Positions 11,000 through 26,914 of a stretch of DNA of 64,000 nucleotides are shown in pieces. A program made the position numbers and the translations under genes. The stretch's first letter is position 1; every line of letters starts with the position of its first letter. Source of the stretch: Obrimoposthia wandeli (Eukaryota); contig CDROCS010000122.1 of assembly GCA_977020255.1 (NCBI GenBank), positions 372,001 to 436,000 on the forward strand. Reading direction: 5' to 3'. The notes beneath the pieces were generated by a model, which saw only the letters and a list, made by a program, of their open reading frames with translations, had not been told where the DNA came from and did no database searches.

Positions 11000-12142
11000 T
11001 TAGCCCGTTAAATCATCAAAAAATTTCTTCACACCATTGAAGAAACCTTCAGACTTTGGCTTATGCTTACTTGCTGCATTTCCCCCAAAGCTTTCTTCTA
11101 GCTCTTTAAGTAGCTCTTTTTGATGAGTACTTAAATTAATAGGGGTTTCAACAACGAGCTTACAAATCAAATCGCCAACCGCACCGCCGCGTACAGACTT
11201 AACGCCTTTACCACGCATACGGAACATACGTCCGGTTTGTGTTTCTGATGGTACTTTTAGATTTACGCGACCATTCAAAGTTGGTACTTCTACTTCACCA
11301 CCAACGGCAGCCATCGTAAAGCTAACAGGTACTTCGCAATATAGGTTGTTGCCATCACGTTCAAAAATTGAATGCTCTGCAACATGTACCTGTACATACA
11401 AATCACCAGCTGGTGCACCAAACTCGCCTGCTTCACCTTCGCCAGAAAGACGAATACGATCACCCGTATCAACACCCGCTGGGATCTTAACAGACAATGT
11501 TTTGGTTTTTTCAACTCGACCTTGACCATGACATGAATTACATGGGTCTTTAATGATCTTGCCGCGACCGTGACAATGTGGACAAGCTTGCTGTACAGCA
11601 AAGAAGCCTTGACGCATTTGTACTTGGCCTTGACCATGACAAGTGCCACACGTTGTTGCTGATGAACCTTTCTTGGCACCAGAACCGTCACACGAATCAC
11701 AACCAACCAATGTTGGTACACGGATTTCTTTAGAACAGCCGCGAACAGCTTCTTCTAATGTCAGTTCCATGTTGTAGCGAAGATCGGAACCGCGTTGAGC
11801 ACGCGACTGTTGACGTCGACCACCGCCGCCGCCACCGAAAATATCGCCAAATACATCACCGAAGATGTCACCGAAATCAGCGCCGCCGCCACCACCGTAG
11901 CCACCGCCGCCGCCACCTTGTTCAAAAGCTGCATGACCGTATTGATCGTATGCTGCTTTCTTTTGAGGATCGGTCAGAATTTCATACGCAGTTTTGACTT
12001 CTTTAAATTTATCAGAAGCATCTGCTTCCTGATTACGATCAGGGTGAAATTTCATTGCAAGGCGTTTATAAGCCTTTTTAATGTCACGTTCTCCGGCGTC
12101 TCGACCAACACCAAGAACTTCATAAAAATCGCGTTTTGACAT
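11000..12142 (-). CDS. dnaJ: Chaperone DnaJ
   Basis: J-domain with HPD, G/F region and four CxxCxGxG zinc-finger repeats. Confidence 0.98.
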
Positions 12143-12230
12143 ACTTAACTGTCACCTGCTTTAAATACAGCTACGGGCGATAGAGTAACCCCTAACGCCC
12201 GTTCGAAAATAAGATTATGAATTAACTATC

Positions 12231-14150
12231 TTATTTTTTTTCGTCTTTTACTTCTTCGAACTCAGCATCAACAACGTTGTCGTCTTGCTTTGCTTCTTGC
12301 TCGCCTTCACCGCTTGGTGCTTGCTGAGCTTGAGCTTTCTGTTGAGCGATTTCCATCAGCTTCTGAGAAGCAGCAACTAGCGCTTGAACTTTCGCGTCGA
12401 TTGCTTCTTTATCTTCAGATTTACGTGCTTCTTCTAATTCAGAAACAGCCGCTTCGATTTTCTCTTTGTCTTCAGCTGGTAGTGCTTCGCCAGCTTCTTC
12501 AACTTGCTTACGAGTGCCGTGAATTAGCTGATCAGCTTGGTTACGAGCCGTTACTAACTCTTCGAACTTCTTGTCCGATTCTTTGTTAGCTTCAGCTTCT
12601 TGAACCATTTTCTCGATATCTTCGTCGGTTAGGCCGCTTGAAGATTGAATCGTAATCTTTTGCTCTTTACCTGTGCTCTTATCTTTAGCAGATACGTGCA
12701 AGATACCATCAGCATCTAGGTCAAATACTACTTCGATTTGTGGCATACCACGAGCAGCAGCTTGAATACCTTCAAGGTTAAACTGACCTAGTGATTTGTT
12801 GTAGCTAGATTGCTTACGCTCACCCTGAAGAACGTGGATAGTTACCGCGCTCTGGTTGTCTTCTGCAGTAGAGAAAACTTGGTTCGCTTTCGTTGGAATC
12901 GTTGTGTTCTTCTCGATCAGTTTAGTCATAACACCACCCATGGTTTCGATACCAAGAGATAGTGGTGTTACGTCAAGAAGAAGTACATCTTTCACGTCAC
13001 CCGCAAGAACACCAGCTTGAACCGCCGCGCCTACAGCAACAGCTTCATCAGGGTTTACGTCTTTACGTGCTTCTTTACCAAAGAACTCAGCAACTTTTGC
13101 TTGAACCATAGGCATACGAGTTTGACCACCAACAACGATTACGTCAGTGATTTCGCTTACCGATAGACCAGCATCAGAAAGAGCAACTTTTAGAGGCTCA
13201 AGAGTACGCTGTACAAGATCTTCAACTAGAGACTCAAGCTTTGCACGAGTCACTTTGATGTTCATGTGCTTAGGACCAGTTGCATCTGCAGTGATGTAAG
13301 GAAGATTCACATCAGTTTGTTGTGCAGAAGAAAGCTCAATTTTCGCTTTCTCAGCAGCTTCTTTAAGACGCTGCATTGCAAGAGGATCGTTGCGAAGATC
13401 CATGCCTTGGTCTTTTTTGAATTCTTCAACTAAGTAGTTGATCATGCGGTTATCGAAATCTTCACCACCAAGGTGTGTATCACCGTTAGTTGAAAGTACT
13501 TCGAACGTCTTCTCGCCTTCTACTTCATCAATTTCGATGATAGAGATATCGAATGTACCACCACCAAGGTCGTAAACTGCGATAGTGCGATCGCCGCCTT
13601 TCTTATCAAGACCGTAAGCAAGTGCTGCTGCTGTTGGTTCGTTGATAATACGCTTAACTTCTAGACCTGCGATACGACCAGCATCTTTCGTTGCTTGACG
13701 CTGAGCATCGTTAAAGTATGCAGGAACAGTAATAACTGCGCCTGTTACTTCTTCGCCTAGGAAGTCTTCAGCTGTTTTCTTCATTTTCTTAAGAATTTCA
13801 GCAGATACTTGAGGAGCAGCCATTTTTTGGCCTTTCGCTTCTACCCATGCATCGCCGTTGTCCGCTTTAACGATTTTGAAAGGCATGATTTTAAGGTCAC
13901 GCTGAACTTCTTCATCTTCAAAGCGACGACCGATTAGACGCTTAATTGCGTATAATGTGTTCTCTGGGTTCGTTATCGCTTGGCGCTTAGCTGGTTGACC
14001 AACTAGCGTTTCACCATCTTGGGTGTAAGCAACAACAGATGCCGTAGTACGTTCACCTTCCGCATTTTCAATTACGCGCGGTTTGTCGCCATCAAGTACT
14101 GCTACACAAGAGTTAGTTGTACCCAAGTCAATACCAATAATTCTACCCAT
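12231..14150 (-). CDS. dnaK: Chaperone DnaK (Hsp70)
   Basis: [18 protein letters not shown] and DLGGGTFD motifs; C-terminal DAEFEEV. Confidence 0.99.
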
Positions 14151-14257
14151 CAGGCTTTCTCTCCGAAATTCATTTAATTTTACAAGCGCGTCCGAAATGA
14201 ACGTCGCTATATGGGGTATACCCAGACAAAATATGTTTACGATGTCGTATGATTACT

Positions 14258-14285
14258 AAATAAGGCCAATCATCCCCATTTCAAG
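14258..14285 (-). promoter_or_regulatory. Sigma32 heat-shock promoter of dnaK
   Basis: CTTGAAA-13 bp-CCTTATTT (consensus CTTGAAA-N13/14-CCCCATNT). Confidence 0.65.
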
Positions 14286-14316
14286 GGGCAACACCTAAAA
14301 AATATCAAAATAAAAT

Positions 14317-14342
14317 AAAAAACCCACCGTAGTGGGTCTTTT
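14317..14342 (-). terminator. Terminator after grpE
   Basis: Hairpin acccac/gtggg with a T-run on the minus strand. Confidence 0.55.
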
Positions 14343-14358
14343 TAAAGCATTTATACAA

Positions 14359-14979
14359 TTATGCTTGCATATCTACACTGCCAGCAGCAGCTTTAGATAC
14401 CATTACCATTGCAGGACGAATAATACGGCCATTTAGCTCATAACCTTTCTGCATAACAAGCATGACAGTATTTGGTTCATGCTCTGCACTTTCCTGAATA
14501 GACATTGCTTGATGGAATTCAGGGTTAAATGCTTCACCTACAGGGTTGTGCTGCTTCAGGCCGAATTTCTCAACAGTTGCCATCATTGTCTTAAGCGTTA
14601 GTTCAACACCTTCAATCATTGACTTCAATGCTTCGTCATTCTTATCGGCCATCTCGATAGCACGCTCAAGATTATCGATAACAGGCAATAACTCTTCGGT
14701 AAATTTATTCAATGCAAATTTACGTGCTTTATCGATTTCTACTTCTGAACGTCGGCGAACATTTTCACCTTCAGCGCGAGCACGAAGTACATTATCGTGC
14801 GCTTCTTTTACTTTTGCATCACTCGTAAGTAAAGCTGCTTCTAATTCAGCAATACGTGCGATTTGCATTTCTTCAGCAGTAACTTCTACAAATTCTTCCT
14901 CAGCAGAAACAGTCTCAGCCGCTTCTACAGTCTCTTGCTGCAGCTGTTCATCCTGTAGTTTTTTGTCTTCATTGTTCAT
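14359..14979 (-). CDS. grpE: Nucleotide exchange factor GrpE
   Basis: [33 protein letters not shown] and GRIIRPAMV motifs. Confidence 0.97.
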
Positions 14980-15084
14980 GCTTTTACTTCTCCGCCAAGA
15001 TACTGATGTATTTTAAATACAATTGTTCACAAATTTGAGTCGATAAACCAGTATTATCTGCTCAAAAAAACATTCATGTGCCTA

Positions 15085-15112
15085 TTATGGGGATGAACTT
15101 CAATGATTCAAG
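15085..15112 (-). promoter_or_regulatory. Sigma32 heat-shock promoter of grpE
   Basis: CTTGAA-14 bp-CCCCATAA, near consensus. Confidence 0.8.
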
Positions 15113-15191
15113 CAGAGTTCGCTAACAAAGCGCGACAAGTCTCTAAACCTAAGGCTATACTGGCTTCACTATCATTTGTCGGATCAAGGAC

Positions 15192-16073
15192 ATGAAGCGC
15201 ATTTTTCAAACAATCGCGTTAATTGGTAAGCCAAGAAACCCAGATGCTCTGCAAACTCACAAAACCCTCTTTGACTGGTTAACAAGCAAAGGTTACGACG
15301 TGTTAGTCGATCATCGATTAGCGAACGACCTTGATGTGCCTCATGACTGTTTGTGCGATTTGCTTACTATTGGTGATAAAGCGAACCTCGCGATTGTCGT
15401 CGGTGGCGATGGCAACATGTTAGGCGCGGCGCGCGTGCTATCGCGTTTCGACATCGCTGTGATTGGTGTTAACCGTGGTAATTTAGGTTTTCTGACCGAT
15501 CTTGCTCCAGAAAGCTTCAAAGAAGAACTAACCCGCGTATTAGAGGGTGAGTTTGTAACAGAACGTCGCTTTTTATTAGAAGCAGAAGTACATCGTCACG
15601 GACAAATAAAAAGCCGGAACGCCGCATTAAACGAAGCTGTATTACACCCAGATAAGATCGCTCACATGATCGAATTTGAAGTGTATATCGATGATAACTT
15701 CGCCTTCTCTCAACGTTCTGATGGTTTGATCATTGCAACCCCGACAGGCTCAACGGCCTATTCGCTGTCTGGTGGTGGTCCTATTCTGTCACCAAGTTTA
15801 AATGCGATTGCCTTAGTGCCGATGTTTCCACATACACTATCAAGTCGTCCTTTAGTGGTCGATGGTAATAGTTGTATCAAATTATTGGTGTCGCCAGACA
15901 ACGGCAGTACATTAGAAGTGAGTTGTGATGGGCAAGTTTCACTGCCTGTGAGCCCAGGGGATGAAGTGCATATCTATCAAAGCCCTGAGCAATTACAGCT
16001 TATCCACCCTAAGAATTATAACTACTACGGTGTACTCCGCGCCAAACTGAATTGGTCAAGTAAACTGTTTTAA
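15192..16073 (+). CDS. nadK: NAD kinase
   Basis: [15 protein letters not shown] and [14 protein letters not shown] motifs; conserved grpE-nadK-recN synteny. Confidence 0.97.
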
Positions 16074-20117: not shown

Positions 20118-20485
20118 GGGGCTGATTCAGGATTCGACAGGATCAAGAAAGCTTGTGGAGCATGCCGTGGGGCGGTTGGCCACGTAAAAAGCCGCAAAAA
20201 AATAGTCGCAAACGACGAAAACTTCGCACTAGCAGCTTAATAACCTGCTAGCGCACTTCTACCCTAGCTTCCGCTTGTAAGACGGGGATTCATAGAAGTT
20301 CAAACCCAAACGAGATAGCGAGGGAACCTTTGACTAGAGAGGTGAACCGCGAAATAGAATTCTGGTATGTATTTACATGGCGTGTCTGTTCGCAGTGTAC
20401 TTACGAGAATAAAGATAGACTAAGCATGTAGCGCCTATGGTTGGATTGCTCTTGGACGCGGGTTCAAATCCCGCCAGCTCCACCA
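20118..20485 (+). ncRNA. ssrA: tmRNA
   Basis: GGGGCTGATTCAGGATTCGAC start; tag frame 20208-20240 encodes ANDENFALAA*; ends GGTTCAAATCCCGCCAGCTCCACCA. Confidence 0.97.
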
Positions 20486-20495
20486 ATCGATTGGA

Positions 20496-20523
20496 AAAGG
20501 ACACCCTCGGGTGTCCTTTTTTG
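20496..20523 (+). terminator. Terminator after ssrA
   Basis: aaaaggacacc-ctcg-ggtgtcctttttt. Confidence 0.85.
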
Positions 20524-20611: not shown

Positions 20612-22324
20612 TCACCACTCTCCCACCAACAACCTGCTTTTGACTCCTCGCACCTGTAACCCCATAGCTTCAAATACAAGTTCAAAGTCTTGGCATTGCG
20701 GTGGGATATTTGGCAAGGTTAAAGCGGCTTCAGAAAAGAAACGTGTTTGTAATGATTCATCTTGCCCCCAAGCGAGATCCCACCAATCCAAAATACGAAC
20801 TTTTGAGGCTTGTAGGCGATAAGCTGTAGGCAATTTGTCGCTCTTTTTTAGGTTCTCGTTAGCTGTTGTTGGTAGCAAATTCCATTTGTCATTATTGGGC
20901 CAATAAGCAAAAGGGAGGCAATGATCTATGTGATATTCATCTTTGAGCTTACGACCACTCCATACACTGTGTATATCTACACTTTGCTGGCGTAACTGTT
21001 CAACCCGCTTACGTATATCTCTCGTGTCGTGATCTTTATCTATCCACACTAAGCAATCATGGTAGGTTTGCAGCGTAATGTTACGCTGACGATTTAGCTC
21101 AAATCGCTGCATTTCCAGTATCCATTGGTTCACAACCAGTGGCTCGATCCATGAGTTATATAGGCGGAAGCACTCCCACAAACTTTCATCTAATACAAAA
21201 CTGCCAAAGCTGCTTAAAAACTCACTATCGATAACTAACGAATCCAAAGATTTACGCTTTACCGTGGGAGGAATAATCTCAAACAATCGATTGTTTTTGT
21301 CACCTTGATATATGAAGGTAACAGGGCCGCTCTTTATCGTCGTCAAGGTATGAGTAAACGTTTTTTGTAGTGCTTTTGCTTCTTTCCCCAGAAACATAGC
21401 ACCTATGGTTAAATCATCTGCCACTAAATGCTTTAGTTGATTCCAGCCATCGTCCTTCACAAACCCCAGCCCTTTACTGCTATTTGCACTTTGCTGAATG
21501 CCTTCAACACCATCAATATTAATATCAATTAAGCGCTTAAACTGGCGTATCCAATAAAGGGCGACCAAGCCAGCAGAAATAGTAACTTTACCATCGCTAC
21601 GATCTATAACAGCACCAGCATGGGCATCAGCCACACGTAATAAGGTTCTAAGTAACGCCAATTTATACGTTGCGACTTTACTGTCGTTCACAATAATGTG
21701 CCGTACTCGCTTGAGATCGCCAGATCCGTCATCGGGCAAACTCATTACAACGGTTTGCCAATGCACATCATCGCGGTGAAGTGAGTCATCGCTACTACTG
21801 ATATGCCTAACCAACAAAGCGCTGTTTTTAGCGAACTGCTCTAATTCTTCGACCGACACACCATAATTTTGGCGTGAATCTTTAAATTCACCGTGACGGA
21901 GAGTGATAACAAGTCTGCCATTCGAGGCTAACAAGTTGGAGAGTTTACGAAAGGCGCGCTCTCTGAGACTCGGGGCAAGATGCATCCAAACCGCGCTTAC
22001 CAATATAAGGTCAAAACGCATTCCAAGATTTTCAGTTTTGCTTAATGCGGGCAGTGCATCATCTAACCAAGTGACAGCGGCCCCTGTATACGCACTACCA
22101 ACTTTACGAAAAGAGTCACAAGGTTCAAGTGCTATGACTTCACAGCCTTGTTCAGCCATCCACTTCGTATCACGCCCGCTGCCAGCACCAACATCGAGCA
22201 CTCTGTCACCGTTATGCGGCCAGAATGCCTTCCAGTTTTGATGCACCGTTTCAAATTCTAGGGAATTGTATTGATCACAGAGCATTGTCGTATTTTGGTC
22301 GTAAAAAGAGGCAGTCGCTGACAT
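20612..22324 (-). CDS. Class I SAM methyltransferase fused to a C-terminal HNH endonuclease
   Basis: Motif I VLDVGAGSGRD and FDLILVSAVWMHL; central KVATYKLALLR domain; HNH HIDHCLPF...NDKWNLLPT...ENLKKSD. Confidence 0.85.
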   Translation of the reverse strand: MSATASFYDQNTTMLCDQYNSLEFETVHQNWKAFWPHNGDRVLDVGAGSGRDTKWMAEQGCEVIALEPCDSFRKVGSAYTGAAVTWLDDALPALSKTENLGMRFDLILVSAVWMHLAPSLRERAFRKLSNLLASNGRLVITLRHGEFKDSRQNYGVSVEELEQFAKNSALLVRHISSSDDSLHRDDVHWQTVVMSLPDDGSGDLKRVRHIIVNDSKVATYKLALLRTLLRVADAHAGAVIDRSDGKVTISAGLVALYWIRQFKRLIDINIDGVEGIQQSANSSKGLGFVKDDGWNQLKHLVADDLTIGAMFLGKEAKALQKTFTHTLTTIKSGPVTFIYQGDKNNRLFEIIPPTVKRKSLDSLVIDSEFLSSFGSFVLDESLWECFRLYNSWIEPLVVNQWILEMQRFELNRQRNITLQTYHDCLVWIDKDHDTRDIRKRVEQLRQQSVDIHSVWSGRKLKDEYHIDHCLPFAYWPNNDKWNLLPTTANENLKKSDKLPTAYRLQASKVRILDWWDLAWGQDESLQTRFFSEAALTLPNIPPQCQDFELVFEAMGLQVRGVKSRLLVGEW

Positions 22325-22383
22325 GAGGAAGACTTATTAATTAAACTAATTTCATCATAAATGGGATGACATATGATTTCTAT

Positions 22384-24450
22384 TTAAACCATTGTGCCTG
22401 TAGGTAATTTTTGCTTAAGCAAATTAATGTCTAGCGGCTTTTGTAAAAATGCGATATCCGTAAATGTTTTAACCTTCTGGATTTCATCTTCAGTATGAGC
22501 AGATAAAATAAAATAATGCTGTTGGCGGTAGCCCTTAGCTTTCATCGATTCAATCAGCGTGAAGCCATCGGTTTCTGCTAGCATGTAGTCCATTAAAATG
22601 ATTAGCTCATCATATACCGCACCATCCTTATGCGTAATGCGATGATCACTCAGTGCTGTCATTGCAGAGAAAACCTCACGTTCATTTTCTGCGGTGGTAA
22701 CGTCAAAGCCTTCGTCTTCAAGCATCGCCTTACATACTTCTAAGTTAAAGCGATTATCATCCACCAGCAATACGCGCCCTTGGTGTTTAGTTACCGTACT
22801 TTGTGGTTTATGTGTTTGCTTAATTAACTGAGCAGCATGTACTTGCAACGGCCTATCATGTTGCTGCGCGGGTGCCTCGTTACTTTGTGGTACAAGAACG
22901 CGAATATTTTCTTCAATTTCCGAACAAACGCGGTATGGGAAATGAAATATTACTAAGGTTCCTTTTCCTTTTCGGCTGCGGATTTTGATTGCGCCACCCA
23001 CACTTTCGATCACTGTTTTACACGTATATAAGCCGATACCAACGCCTGATTTTAACGCTGTTGGCGAACTGTCGTCAGTGGTAAATGGCTTACTTAACGC
23101 TTGCTGAGATGCCACTGACATTCCCTTGCCAAAGTCTCTTACTGCCACGCGAATGAAGCCATCCACTTGCGAACTCAGCGCGGTATTATGCCTACTAGCA
23201 ACGTCTTTAATCGCCTTAACTTTAACATCTAAAATAACAATATCGCCGCTACTGTATTTAAAGGCGTTATTAACAAGGTTGGTGGTCAATTGAAAAAACT
23301 TGGTTGTGTCTAACAGAATGTGAGGTGGCGTCGCATCCCTAAGGTTTAGCATCAGCTGTTTTTTATGAGTGCTACCGAATGCTCGGTAATAATCATCAAT
23401 TTTATACAAGTACTCAATCAAATCGACCTTCTCATAATAGAGCGTCAAGCTACCTGAAGATGCTTTGGTATAAGTGAGGGTATTTTGCGCGACACTGTTC
23501 AGCAGGTTCGCCGACCAGATGATTTTCTCTACCGTATTTTGCCTGTGTGCATCATCGCAAGCCATATTGTTGAGCATGTTGGCATAACCCAATACGGCAT
23601 TAATGGGCGTTCTGATTTCATGATTAAGAGTAGACAGTAGGGCAAATTTTGAATTTGTTTCAATGCGCTGTTTATTTATATTGATCCGATGTTGCACCAG
23701 AATAAAAAATAAGACCGACAAACTAAGACCAAGCAACGTAATCACTAAAATGAGTAAGCTTATACCTAATAACTCTCTCTTCGTCGGTACATAATCAACA
23801 GTTAAGTTAAGGCTAGTACCATATTCAGGCAGGTCGACAAACTGTTTAGTATGAAAACCAAATATATCGGTCCAGTATTGCTCTTTATTACACCCATGAT
23901 TAGATAGTGTTTGATTACTGAATGTAACGCGAACACACACACCACTATACTGCTCTATACGCTGCTGGATCTCTTGGTGAGACACTGCGTAAACGATATA
24001 GGGTACTTTAGGTTCATCTATTTTCATCACTATTGATGAAAAATTATCAATTAAGAAGGTGATATTGCCGTTCTCATCGATTTCAGCTTTGCCTTTTTCT
24101 ATCGCAGATTTAAATCTAGAATCAGATATAAGTACTGGCGTTAAGGCCGGACTAAGCGTGAAAGCAACCGCCGATTTAATTTTTAATAAATTTTTGGAGA
24201 ACTGTGAAAACTCCACTTCAGATATGTAATCAGAAGCGTTAAAGAATGCGCGTAGTGCATCCGTAATAATGCGGTGCTGAATCAGTGTATCTCTTGAGGA
24301 ATCTAATACAATATCAGACTTATATTGATATTGTTTATCTAAGTCATTTTGGAAATAATTCCATAATGCGGTATTAATCAACGTCGTGACAACGAAGCCC
24401 ATCAACAGCACAATGCAAGCAATACGGCTAAATCTCACTTTCAATGTCAT
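22384..24450 (-). CDS. Hybrid sensor histidine kinase (CHASE-like periplasmic domain, HisKA, HATPase, REC)
   Basis: Two TM helices; LRAFFNASDYISEVEFSQF is CHASE-like; H-box NHEIRTP, N-box NLVNNAFKY, G1 DFGKGM, G2 GVGIGL; REC domain VLLVDDN...MDY...KP. Confidence 0.9.
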   Translation of the reverse strand: MTLKVRFSRIACIVLLMGFVVTTLINTALWNYFQNDLDKQYQYKSDIVLDSSRDTLIQHRIITDALRAFFNASDYISEVEFSQFSKNLLKIKSAVAFTLSPALTPVLISDSRFKSAIEKGKAEIDENGNITFLIDNFSSIVMKIDEPKVPYIVYAVSHQEIQQRIEQYSGVCVRVTFSNQTLSNHGCNKEQYWTDIFGFHTKQFVDLPEYGTSLNLTVDYVPTKRELLGISLLILVITLLGLSLSVLFFILVQHRININKQRIETNSKFALLSTLNHEIRTPINAVLGYANMLNNMACDDAHRQNTVEKIIWSANLLNSVAQNTLTYTKASSGSLTLYYEKVDLIEYLYKIDDYYRAFGSTHKKQLMLNLRDATPPHILLDTTKFFQLTTNLVNNAFKYSSGDIVILDVKVKAIKDVASRHNTALSSQVDGFIRVAVRDFGKGMSVASQQALSKPFTTDDSSPTALKSGVGIGLYTCKTVIESVGGAIKIRSRKGKGTLVIFHFPYRVCSEIEENIRVLVPQSNEAPAQQHDRPLQVHAAQLIKQTHKPQSTVTKHQGRVLLVDDNRFNLEVCKAMLEDEGFDVTTAENEREVFSAMTALSDHRITHKDGAVYDELIILMDYMLAETDGFTLIESMKAKGYRQQHYFILSAHTEDEIQKVKTFTDIAFLQKPLDINLLKQKLPTGTMV

Positions 24451-24736
24451 TTAGTAGTTGTTGTAAAGTAAGGGTATTAGCAACCAATTCACTCTTGGTA
24501 TCTTTTGTTAACGTAATCATGTCGTTTTCAACATTCAGGTAACGACAAATCCCTTTGAATTTATGCTGCAAAGCCGCAACCTCATCACGTTGAGTACTGT
24601 CTAACATCGTTATTTGAGTTAACAGCATATCAAGCTCTTCTGTTAACACGTTATACAGGCGTCGTTTATTCTCTTCAGAGTAATCATTAAAGAACGACAT
24701 TACTTTTATATGAATACATTGACTAATGGGTAGCAT
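24428..24736 (-). CDS. Stand-alone Hpt phosphotransfer protein
   Basis: About 100 aa helical protein with the Hpt motif LQHKFKG; SD AGGTGAGG precedes ATG 24736, which overlaps the EAL gene end. Confidence 0.75.
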   Translation of the reverse strand: MLPISQCIHIKVMSFFNDYSEENKRRLYNVLTEELDMLLTQITMLDSTQRDEVAALQHKFKGICRYLNVENDMITLTKDTKSELVANTLTLQQLLNDIESEI

Positions 24737-25943
24737 TTTTAGCCTCACCTTGATGATTATAATCATTTATCCATGTCATTAAATAACGTCCTTCTATTGG
24801 TGGGCTAAAGTAATACCCTTGCGCAGTATGGCAACCTAATAGCTGTAATCGATTCAGTACACCTAGTGTTTCTACCCCTTCGGCAACCACTTTAACGTTG
24901 AGCTTTTTCGCTAAAGCAATGGTCGATTCAACAATGGCTTGGTGCTGAAGATTGGAGTCGAGATCTGAAACAAAGTCTTTGTCTATTTTGATTTCGTCAA
25001 ACGGAATGCTGTCAAGTCTATCGAAGGTGGAGTAACTTTTACCAAAATCATCAAGCGAGATAGGAATATCATTAATGATCAATTTAGCAATAGCCTGCAA
25101 AGAACGCTCTTGATTAATGGTGTGTTGTGACTCTGTTAGCTCCAACATCAGCTGAATATCACTCGCTGCTAAATGTTTTGCAATCAAGTGATTAATGAGT
25201 TCTTCTGACAAAAGGTCGCTAGCGCTAATATTAATAGACAAGCCGTACTGTTTTAAAGCCGGAAAGAGTTGCCAATGAGAAATAGCCTGATCAACGACCA
25301 ACCGAGTAAATTGACAATTAAGCCCAGCTTGCTCGATCAAAGGGATAAATTTATCAGGATAGATAAAACCATCGCCTTGAATCGTTAACCGCGATAGCAC
25401 TTCAAAACCGATGAGTTTGTTAGATTTGATATCGACCTTAGGTTGATAACAGAGAAATAAATTATCTTCATTGAGCAAAGAAGCAATATTGGCGCTGTTA
25501 CAGTTGGCTTGCTCCGCTTTAGATTCCGGCACCTCTTGGGCTGTAAATTGATTATTATTCAATAAATTGAGCACTTCGTTAGCATTTAATGGCTTTTGAA
25601 ATACGCCAACAAGGTTAAGGTTAAAGCTGTTCGTGATATTACCGATCAGATCTAAGGTTCGTTGATCAGACGAGCTAACGATAACTAAAGGGATATTTTT
25701 ACTTTTGGTTGTTGCCATATAATTGATGATCGCAAGGCCATCACCATTTTCCATTTTAAGATCGGTGATAATGAGATCAAATTCAGGTTCAGTGTTTAAT
25801 GCCGATTGTTCAAGTAACGTGATGGCTGAATTACCGCAATCTGCCTCAAAAAAGATAAAGTTTTGTAACGGATCCTTACCTACCAATTCACTTTTAATTA
25901 TTTCCCTAATAAACGTTTGGTCGTCAACAATCAATATTTTCAC
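24723..25943 (-). CDS. Response regulator REC-EAL c-di-GMP phosphodiesterase
   Basis: REC domain (ILIVDD, ITD, KP) plus EAL motifs EVLSR, NIS, ELTE, DDFG, EIKID, EGVE and QGYYFS, all present. Confidence 0.92.
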   Translation of the reverse strand: MKILIVDDQTFIREIIKSELVGKDPLQNFIFFEADCGNSAITLLEQSALNTEPEFDLIITDLKMENGDGLAIINYMATTKSKNIPLVIVSSSDQRTLDLIGNITNSFNLNLVGVFQKPLNANEVLNLLNNNQFTAQEVPESKAEQANCNSANIASLLNEDNLFLCYQPKVDIKSNKLIGFEVLSRLTIQGDGFIYPDKFIPLIEQAGLNCQFTRLVVDQAISHWQLFPALKQYGLSINISASDLLSEELINHLIAKHLAASDIQLMLELTESQHTINQERSLQAIAKLIINDIPISLDDFGKSYSTFDRLDSIPFDEIKIDKDFVSDLDSNLQHQAIVESTIALAKKLNVKVVAEGVETLGVLNRLQLLGCHTAQGYYFSPPIEGRYLMTWINDYNHQGEAKNATH

Positions 25944-25948
25944 GGTGG

Positions 25949-26914
25949 TTATCCCTTACTTTTGATATTGAGAAAGTCTACTAGCTGTTTTGGCGATATC
26001 ACGGCAAGTTTCAGTAGAAAACGGTTCGCCATCAATTCAGAGCGACTTAGCAAGAAAGAGTGTATCGCAACCGTTTTGTCTTCTAGCTGTATGGTTCGCA
26101 CCTTAAAGGCATCTAATTTTGCTGCATTAAGCTTTTTGATGAACCCTTCATCACACACACTAAAACAAAGATAGCGTAAATTTTTTTGGTTTACGAAATG
26201 ATTAATGTAGGTAGACATAATGCTGTTCTCTAACTCGGTCGTTGCACCTGCTGACGACAGCACTAACATCGTATCGGGCCGTTTTTTAGGGCTTCGAGTA
26301 ACGATCTCGTTTAAATCGCTTTTGATGTTCACCAATTCCAATACATATTGAGAAGACGTTTCGATATAGAGAGCATGCCCAACGATCTGATCATTGAATG
26401 CATTGGCGATATGGATTTTTAAATCCTTAAGCCCATCAAACTCCGCTAGAGGTAATTTTAGGACAAGGCTTGGGTTATTTTCATAACGCAGAATCATTTT
26501 TAGCATGATGTAAAAACTGTCGTCATTAATATCAATAACTTGGATGTCGTAATTATCATTGGTGTAATAGGGATGAGAGGATTTGAACCGACTCTGGTTC
26601 GGAATTGAAACTAATGTACAACACTCCTCCAAAAATTGAGGATCATGGCGATAAATACTGGTCAGCTCATTATCATACAGCTCAACAATTTCAGCTTGTT
26701 TTGCCAATGATGGAATATTAATGCTCCGCTCCCAGCGGCTCACGGTTATGGTATCGAGATTGTAAAATAAGCTACTATGTTGACGTAAATACAAACAAAG
26801 CTGTTCTTGAGATAATTTGTTATTTTGGCGTAGATGTTTCAAAAACATCGCAAAGACATTATGTTTCTTTTTTTTTGAATAAGAGCAACTTGTCGGTGTC
26901 ATAACACTTTCCAT
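25949..26914 (-). CDS. XRE-family HTH regulator with uncharacterised C-terminal domain
   Basis: LKHLRQNNKLSQEQL...TVSRWERSINIPS HTH followed by about 240 aa of unassigned sequence. Confidence 0.75.
   Translation of the reverse strand: MESVMTPTSCSYSKKKKHNVFAMFLKHLRQNNKLSQEQLCLYLRQHSSLFYNLDTITVSRWERSINIPSLAKQAEIVELYDNELTSIYRHDPQFLEECCTLVSIPNQSRFKSSHPYYTNDNYDIQVIDINDDSFYIMLKMILRYENNPSLVLKLPLAEFDGLKDLKIHIANAFNDQIVGHALYIETSSQYVLELVNIKSDLNEIVTRSPKKRPDTMLVLSSAGATTELENSIMSTYINHFVNQKNLRYLCFSVCDEGFIKKLNAAKLDAFKVRTIQLEDKTVAIHSFLLSRSELMANRFLLKLAVISPKQLVDFLNIKSKG

Follow-up and report, generated by a model that had tools for sequence, protein, structure and literature searches.

Phosphorothioate (PT)-dependent restriction enzymes are understood as simple fusions of a reader domain to a nuclease, which work without partners. 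Enzymes that attack PT-modified DNA are expected to avoid PT writers, whereas systems such as SspE, which use the PT of the host, are not. The reader is a sulfur-binding domain (SBD), whose sulfur cavity consists of an H-[K/R] dipeptide and an x-P motif about 48-50 residues later (PMC6224610, PMC10602919). The cavity proline is essential, as the P165N substitution abolishes binding (PMC6224610), and an alternative view treats the SBD as a plain winged helix-turn-helix (PMC10853773). A published census of SBD partners lists HNH, SRA, kinase, PD-(D/E)XK and unknown domains, and no methyltransferase (MT) (PMC10602919); neither the New England Biolabs (NEB) screen nor the Aravind-lab reappraisal mentions an MT with an SBD. 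Here we describe a gene in a 64,000-nucleotide stretch of DNA (contig CDROCS010000122.1, positions 372,001 to 436,000, assembly GCA_977020255.1, deposited as Obrimoposthia wandeli; hereafter the window), in which an S-adenosylmethionine (SAM)-dependent MT is joined to an SBD-like domain and an HNH nuclease domain (Table 1). We propose with moderate confidence that the gene encodes a stand-alone, modification-dependent (type IV-like) defence nuclease of the PT-reader type, from a large family with a coupled SAM MT.

The family of this gene couples one clade of SAM MTs, by fusion or by overlapping operon, to a winged-helix reader-HNH nuclease. Among 301 Vibrionaceae species genomes, about 88 (~29%) carry the fusion at full length and about 10 carry split or stop-containing remnants, while about 46 contain a separate open reading frame (ORF) of ~205 amino acids that is 45-73% identical to residues 1-196 of the window protein. 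At all six free-MT loci fetched first, a protein of 375-389 amino acids follows immediately. Its N-terminus matches the crystallized SBD of Hga (8h0l, E 2.7e-25), with the HK and NP cavity residues present, and its C-terminus matches the HNH domain of VcaM4I (6yex, E 2.9e-29). The NCBIfam model NF045808 ('phosphorothioated DNA-binding restriction endonuclease') also matches this partner, at an E value of 2e-18 that is below the model's threshold. Full-length canonical SBD-HNH proteins are encoded in 59 of the 301 genomes, in 38 cases within 36 bp of a free MT. Likewise, 38 of the 46 free MTs have a canonical SBD-HNH partner, at a spacing of 36 bp or less or with overlapping genes, and these MTs are 50-73% identical to residues 1-196. 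Four more genomes have the canonical SBD-HNH gene 76-177 bp upstream of the fused gene, which brings the total beside this MT to 42 of 59. In Aliivibrio-type loci (G036:C22:48414-51308, likewise G055, G045 and G067; cf. L056 and L065) the SBD-HNH gene and the fused gene lie on the same strand, and two different reader-nucleases appear to share one MT domain.

Two of the free MTs that are paired with canonical SBD-HNH proteins are 70-73% identical to the fused MT domain. Nuclease modules have therefore been swapped behind a conserved MT. Three of the remaining free MTs precede a distant homolog, of 366-380 amino acids, of the middle and HNH_4 part of the window protein. The homolog of 366 amino acids is found by BLASTP at 3e-8 and contains both an HNH_4 domain and the sequence ATYKFALL, a form of the ATYKxALL motif of the family; the pair is a two-gene version of the window protein's architecture. 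A further member of the MT clade stands at a dnd-type locus on the Rhizobium phaseoli plasmid pRphaN831b (L091:2334-4576). There, the gene of a 339-amino-acid protein shares 4 nt with a DGQHR_dnd_1 gene (TIGR04172, 464 bits), and the C-terminal half of this protein, past 150 unassigned N-terminal residues, is a same-clade MT (38% identity). The adjoining genes are those of TusA, an FtsK-like translocase, dndD and a small 'DNA modification system-associated' protein. Three independent arrangements thus tie the MT clade to PT biology.

Of the 301 genomes, 38 have the PT-writer gene dndC with a score over its curated cut-off, and its co-occurrence with the MT systems was compared in a test that ignores phylogeny. 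The fused gene is accompanied by dndC in 6 of 88 genomes, as against 32 of the 213 genomes without the fused gene (Fisher p = 0.057), and the split system in 1 of 46 (p = 0.016). For either form the figures are 7/133 with and 31/168 without (p = 0.0007). The genome of the window itself has no dndC above the cut-off. A type IV system is expected to have no protective DNA methylase of its own and to be rarely found together with the modification that it targets. The window protein contains no DNA MT, and for the fused form the lower co-occurrence with dndC is marginal (p = 0.057, phylogeny ignored).

The N-terminal domain of the window protein is matched by the Pfam profiles Methyltransf_23, 11, 25 and 12 over residues 36-160, all above their gathering scores (39.3 bits for Methyltransf_23, with a cut-off of 27), and a full-length AlphaFold2 model has a mean local confidence (pLDDT) of 91.9 and a predicted TM-score (pTM) of 0.75. 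The domain has the Rossmann-like fold, the GxGxG motif I and, as E67, the acidic residue after strand 2 with which class I SAM MTs bind the ribose. Across 60 family members G46 is conserved in 60, G50 in 58 and D44 in 52, G48 is conserved as well, and the SAM-binding residues D44, G46, G48, G50, E67, D89 and D105 are kept down to 23% identity. Additionally, W113-M114-H115, which follows strand 4, is conserved over the same range of identity, in 52-55 of the 60. The nearest solved structures in Foldseek are RPA2492, UbiG, cg3271, toxoflavin N-methyltransferase, PMT and TPMT, and the match to 3e23 has a target-normalised TM-score of 0.79. The protein has no motif IV and no target-recognition domain, no DNA MT is among its top structural neighbours, and [DNS]PP[YFW] occurs in none of the 60 members. 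The MT domain of this protein is not a DNA methyltransferase. NCBIfam gives only small-molecule MT matches far below threshold (CpaM, daptide, UbiG, TehB and TPMT), apart from Cas9 HNH; those to TehB and TPMT recur as weak sub-threshold similarities in every member tested, and no substrate can be assigned from such scores. Judged by sequence conservation, the SAM site and the residues after strand 4 would fit an active enzyme at least as well as a SAM sensor.

The C-terminal nuclease domain is recognised by Pfam as HNH_4 over residues 460-499 (26.2 bits, cut-off 22). Among 75 diverse family representatives D467, H468 and N482 are present in all and N491 in 74, as belongs to an HNH_4 nuclease. 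The fold matches the Cas9 HNH domain in Foldseek (E 5.6e-3) and in VIA-align (Z 7.5). A previous sequence-only reading of this DNA had described the gene as a non-standard fusion of an MT resembling small-molecule or protein MTs, a central domain with a K-x-ATYKLALL motif and an apparently intact HNH nuclease, and the Pfam domains, the structural neighbours and the conserved residues bear out this description, including the motif (see below). That reading had also stated that the MT lacks both NPPY/DPPY and PC motifs. The first part stands; a 'PC' dipeptide is in fact present at residues 68-69, where Cys is found in 6 of the 60 members and which is not the position of motif IV. The likeness of the middle domain to SBDs and the recurrent link of the MT to PT-reader HNH nucleases, which form the key connection in the present analysis, were absent from it.

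The fold of the middle domain, its place in the domain order and its sequence pattern suggest that it is SBD-like, though without demonstrated SBD homology. Pfam has no match in residues 200-450, and an AlphaFold2 model of residues 200-570 has a pLDDT of 94.6 and a pTM of 0.91. In VIA-align, SBD structures are among the best matches of residues 1-229 of this model, over 122-137 residues: SprMcrA (7ccd, Z 7.1, 130 residues aligned), Hga (8h0l, 6.2) and ScoMcrA (5zmn, 6.3; 5zmm, 6.2; 5zmo, 6.0). Because a Z of 6-7 is middling, and the program warns that values below 8 may reflect a common arrangement, the fold match alone is no more than a lead. With the model of residues 200-570, Foldseek against the PDB recognised the HNH domain alone. 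A profile search against the PDB was dominated by MT columns and uninformative on the middle domain, a feature search of the ESM Atlas returned unnamed clusters only, and BLASTP of the middle domain against characterised SBDs found no homology.

Canonical SBDs read SPHKvcMLLAVMDLI, and the T-Y-K-L-A-L-L of the family parallels the canonical P-H-K-x-x-M-L-L. K221 is invariant in the 75 representatives, and Y220 is present in 73, the other two having His. At 43 residues past the TYKLALL pattern, 48 of the 75 have [Y/F]-x-P. Position 264 is accordingly Pro in 48, while it is Arg in 12, which comprise the entire Vibrionaceae clade including the window protein, and another residue in 15. Compared by position and pattern with the SBD cavity, the window protein thus keeps the Lys (K221), has Tyr instead of His (Y220) and has Arg instead of Pro (R264).

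The family is large. A word search found more than 3000 full-length homologs, whose annotation goes no further than 'class I SAM-dependent methyltransferase' or similar names. Searched exhaustively, residues 200-570 gave 963 clusters (50% identity) at E <= 1e-3, and most of these have 560-595 amino acids and a match that begins near residue 200, which makes them the same fusion. Metagenome representatives that seemed to consist of the middle and HNH domains alone were set aside as unreliable, as two of the three looked up begin at contig edges. The gene in the window is that of a Photobacterium of the profundum group; it is 95-96% identical to the genes of P. frigidiphilum, P. indicum and P. 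profundum. Within Vibrionaceae the mean column identity is 72%, and the identities are incongruent with taxonomy, with 74-75% in the Vibrio splendidus group and 61-69% in many Photobacterium. Plasmids of Alpha- and Gammaproteobacteria, namely of Pseudoalteromonas, Roseomonas, Sphingobium, Azospirillum and Sinorhizobium, also carry the fusion at 34-41% identity, and there insertion sequence (IS) elements, toxin-antitoxin genes, a dGTPase and a NERD protein are its neighbours. An HNH gene upstream of the fusion in Azospirillum had no sequence match in the PDB, and a tandem SBD-HNH is not demonstrable there.

No constant partner gene exists across 80 loci. From these loci, 102 non-redundant nearest-neighbour proteins were scanned with PADLOC, which recognised a type I restriction endonuclease, DrmA, ZorE, PtuA, DpdF, BrxH, PsyrT, PbeA-like proteins, a type IV enzyme, PDC-S41, PDC-S68, PDC-S69 and NERD-UvrD helicases. 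PDC-S07 and dGTPase are further neighbours, and in total at least a dozen distinct defence proteins are among the 102, a count that has no background control. This combination of an accessory distribution with defence-gene neighbours is the signature of a defence gene. Sister genomes of the profundum group have the same upstream flank, but ssrA, the gene of transfer-messenger RNA (tmRNA), lies at 0.4, 5.6 or more than 10 kb from the gene. Variable cargo therefore inserts between ssrA and the MT-HNH gene. In other clades tRNA-Ser(GGA) or tRNA-Arg(TCT) often lies just upstream of the gene, rather than ssrA downstream. The gene was previously suspected to be defence cargo, with no experimental characterisation known. 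The variable, defence-rich neighbourhoods agree with an accessory gene, PADLOC v2 has no model for the fusion beyond a partial match to the MT fold of mad2, and a search of the literature outside subscription-only papers turned up neither the fusion nor the MT and SBD-HNH operon. The related claim that it is cargo because it is the first gene after ssrA oversimplifies, as the variable cargo of sister species sits between ssrA and the gene.

Several of these neighbourhoods have features of their own. In P. profundum ATCC BAA-1252 (L003:11882-17200) the slot between gene and ssrA holds a NUDIX protein (PDC-S07), a 948-amino-acid PLD-helicase-DUF3427 type IV enzyme and PDC-S41; it lacks an integrase and is thus an integrase-less defence hotspot, and the same slot is empty in the window. 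At V. splendidus-group loci (L005-L018, L024, L034 and L069; ~11760-15570) DUF429, Peptidase_M15_4 and a protein of 626-652 amino acids with a C-terminal Zn_protease domain (PF05618) invariably come after the gene, and then an integrase/AlpA island or ssrA; none of these three proteins has a PADLOC match. In a four-domain metagenomic variant (L100:8001-10283, protein P0244), the MT, SBD-like and HNH_4 domains are followed at the C-terminus by a LexA/UmuD-like Peptidase_S24 domain, and the island that encodes it also contains NERD, AbiEii, BubE-ThiF-Multi_ubiq and an Eco57I-type enzyme. Given its S24 domain, this branch may have a switch based on self-cleavage triggered by DNA damage (RecA*).

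If the gene is a PT-reader type of defence nuclease, as we propose, the SBD-like middle domain would dock on DNA that carries a backbone mark, and the Cas9-type HNH domain would cut near the mark. In the canonical sister systems this mark would be PT. Since arginine takes the place of the sulfur-cavity proline in the Vibrionaceae clade, the mark there may be either PT or something related to it. The N-terminal domain would bind SAM and most likely perform an accessory methyl transfer linked to the recognised mark or the target DNA; its substrate could be the nucleophilic sulfur of PT or breakdown products that contain PT, or the domain could gate the nuclease. A self-protective methylation of bases in the classical manner is unlikely.

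Several observations weigh against this proposal. In the VIA-align list that contains the SBDs, generic winged helices (Cdc6/ORC and RepA) score Z 5-6.6, and hhalign gives the middle domain a probability below 1% against a canonical SBD profile, which is shallow (effective number of sequences 1.5). NF045808 is not among the NCBIfam matches of the window protein, and the proline that is essential to the SBD sulfur cavity is R264 here. The avoidance of dndC is marginal for the fused form alone, with six genomes carrying both. In public RNA libraries with words in common with the region, coverage is essentially confined to ssrA/tmRNA. Finally, a type IV enzyme needs no MT, which leaves that domain unexplained.

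A more specific role for the MT would be that of a DNA-phosphorothioate S-methyltransferase, or of an enzyme that methylates PT-containing breakdown products. It would then be the first enzyme known to act chemically on the PT sulfur, and we regard this as a doubtful, speculative extension. Guided by the reader, the MT would turn PT into a labile S-methyl triester, which would mark, break or erase the PT modification while the HNH domain cuts. If PT S-methylation is true, the MT and SBD-HNH operons and the fusion would define a new PT-targeting immune mechanism.

The gene could instead be a restriction-modification (R-M) system in one polypeptide, in which the MT would put an unconventional methyl mark on host DNA, at base or backbone, and the reader-HNH part would cut unmarked DNA. 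In the split operons the MT gene precedes that of the nuclease and its stop codon overlaps the start codon of the latter, an arrangement shared by many R-M operons. The SAM-binding residues are conserved, and a precedent exists in McrA-like HNH enzymes, which neighbouring methylases inhibit (PMC12409345). However, this MT has neither target-recognition domain nor motif IV and its nearest structures are small-molecule enzymes, and the carriers avoid dndC. Moreover, the same MT clade pairs with the SBD-HNH class, which was shown experimentally to cut PT-modified and not unmodified DNA (PMC6224610, PMC7461809). We therefore consider an R-M system unlikely.

The conserved SAM pocket and the stand-alone position of the gene in defence islands would also suit a guard of the sensing kind that the previous reading had considered, whose MT fold senses SAM, S-adenosylhomocysteine (SAH) or a modified nucleotide. 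Its HNH domain would be freed when phage SAM-degrading enzymes lower SAM, leading to abortive infection, and the variant with a LexA-like S24 domain is evidence that switch domains can occur in the family. Nothing in the analysis favours sensing over catalysis, though, and W113-M114-H115, located where class I enzymes bind their substrates, is conserved in most members. Nor would a generic sensor predict that the MT is coupled, repeatedly and specifically, with PT readers and also with a dnd-type locus. A sensing role thus seems rather improbable.

A non-defence function is very unlikely, whether in housekeeping, in repair or detoxification (e.g., of sulfur-containing nucleic-acid damage) or as a conserved flank gene of ssrA. 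The high conservation within Vibrionaceae, the fixation of the gene in the P. profundum group, where islands enter the interval that separates it from ssrA, and the weak TehB/TPMT-type similarities, which suggest detoxifying enzymes, are consistent with such a role. These are set against the presence of the gene in only a minority of the sampled species with several pseudogenised copies, its variable neighbourhoods beside different tRNA/tmRNA genes, the incongruent identities, its carriage on plasmids and its defence neighbours. Specifically, vertical inheritance as a core gene that flanks ssrA was rejected, given ~88 of 301 species, decayed copies, neighbours that vary by clade and adjoin ssrA, tRNA-Ser(GGA) or tRNA-Arg(TCT), and identities that do not follow taxonomy. 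A selfish addiction or homing module, with the HNH domain as toxin or homing endonuclease and the MT as antidote, would account for a nuclease tightly coupled to a second activity and for its mobile, patchy occurrence at tRNA/tmRNA hotspots and on plasmids, but it is highly improbable as no flanking repeats, intein/intron context or att repeat were seen, the gene is not inserted inside other genes and an SBD-like reader is atypical of homing enzymes.

The ORF is real and intact in the ORF listing. Its stop codon lies 127 bp from the 3' end of ssrA, towards which it converges, and a hairpin with a T-run is seen in the window sequence at ~20499-20522. Neither an integrase nor a second copy of the ssrA 3' end was found in the window; the gene is therefore adjacent to ssrA and not within a demonstrable att-bounded island. 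On the upstream side, a 59-bp gap with the weak promoter-like match separates the ORF from a hybrid histidine kinase gene on the same strand. This gene (688 amino acids) opens a block at 22384-26914 (minus strand) that continues with a 112-amino-acid ORF, an EAL-domain response regulator of 406 amino acids and an XRE-like protein of 321 amino acids. The block is kept only in the P. profundum group (L001-L003) and elsewhere does not adjoin the MT-HNH gene. In a marine sediment metatranscriptome (run X9), four contigs of 150-174 nt, with a depth of 2-6 and 5-8% divergence, lie on the gene body within window positions 20832-22320, while the rest of what this library contains from the region is tmRNA. 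The contigs could stem from weak transcription of a close homolog or from carried-over DNA, and are at most a hint of transcription in close homologs and no proof of it.

Table 1. Features of the MT-reader-HNH gene and its flanks, in window coordinates.
Feature	Position	Strand	Details
Whole ORF	20612..22324	-	570 amino acids and stop codon; ATG start; MT, SBD-like reader and HNH nuclease in one polypeptide
Class I SAM-dependent MT, small-molecule type	21731..22324	-	Residues 1-198; Pfam, Foldseek, motif conservation
Motif I, SAM-binding loop	22169..22201	-	Residues 42-52, VLDVGAGSGRD
Linker and predicted winged-helix, SBD-like DNA reader	21026..21730	-	Residues 199-433; insertion of ~65 residues relative to canonical SBDs
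T219-Y220-K221-L-A-L-L, start of recognition helix	21650..21670	-	Candidate equivalent of the SBD H-[K/R] dipeptide, by position and pattern only
F262-K263-R264	21533..21541	-	Most family members have [Y/F]-x-P at this site; Arg in place of the SBD cavity Pro
HNH (beta-beta-alpha-metal) nuclease, Cas9-like HNH_4, with C-terminal helical extension	20615..21025	-	Residues 434-570; Pfam, fold
HNH catalytic core, D467-H468 ... N482 ... N491	20852..20926	-	Conserved in family representatives
ssrA (tmRNA)	20118..20485	+	ARAGORN; convergent neighbour; integration hotspot in relatives
Weak sigma-70-like promoter match	22354..22382	-	9/12 consensus positions; number of such sites in the region not above shuffles

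The view of PT-dependent enzymes as partner-free stands beside the finding that in Vibrionaceae 42 of 59 canonical SBD-HNH genes adjoin one particular SAM MT. This raises the testable question of what part SAM chemistry plays in PT-directed immunity, and points to a component missing from defence-system catalogues. The family also offers new reader domains, some with arginine instead of proline in the sulfur cavity, that would be usable in biotechnology based on PT or other backbone modifications.

Among known systems, the TehB, TPMT and UbiG-type MTs resemble the N-terminal domain in fold and SAM-binding motifs, TPMT being among its structural neighbours; however, the scores are far below the family cut-offs and those enzymes are not fused to DNA-binding or nuclease domains. 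Type IIG and IIL enzymes (MmeI and Eco57I type) likewise have a SAM MT and a nuclease in one polypeptide, but theirs are gamma-class N6-adenine MTs with NPPY, target-recognition domains and a PD-(D/E)XK nuclease, whereas the window protein lacks these and has an HNH nuclease. Among phage and defence profiles, PHROGs gave nothing specific for the window protein, and PADLOC gave weak Cas9 HNH matches in addition to a match to mad2 of MADS (E 7.9e-15) over the class I MT fold. Only positions 289-426 of the 492 in the mad2 profile are matched, and MADS is a multi-gene system (mad1-mad8) whereas the 80 loci have no constant neighbour. With a partial MT-fold match and no conserved partner genes, membership of MADS was rejected.

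The SBD-HNH, PT-dependent type IV enzymes (SprMcrA, EcoWI and ScoMcrA) share with the window protein a predicted winged-helix reader that is N-terminal to an HNH domain, a middling fold match of Z 6-7 over 122-137 residues and a Lys-containing dipeptide that opens the recognition helix, with an aromatic-x-Pro about 43 residues later in most of the window protein's family. In addition, carriers of the family avoid dndC genomes, and the sibling MT is coupled to canonical members. The window protein differs from these enzymes in that it has no detectable sequence homology to them, reads Tyr-Lys and not His-Lys/Arg, has Arg for the cavity Pro, and contains an insertion of ~65 residues, an HNH_4 instead of an HNH_2 domain and the N-terminal SAM MT. 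The two-gene MT and SBD-HNH operons of Vibrionaceae (e.g., L082, 4989-6745) differ from it in having separate genes and a canonical SBD (HK and NP cavity) with a VcaM4I-like HNH_2 domain, while their MT is of the same clade and, as in the window protein, is placed upstream of the reader-HNH nuclease.

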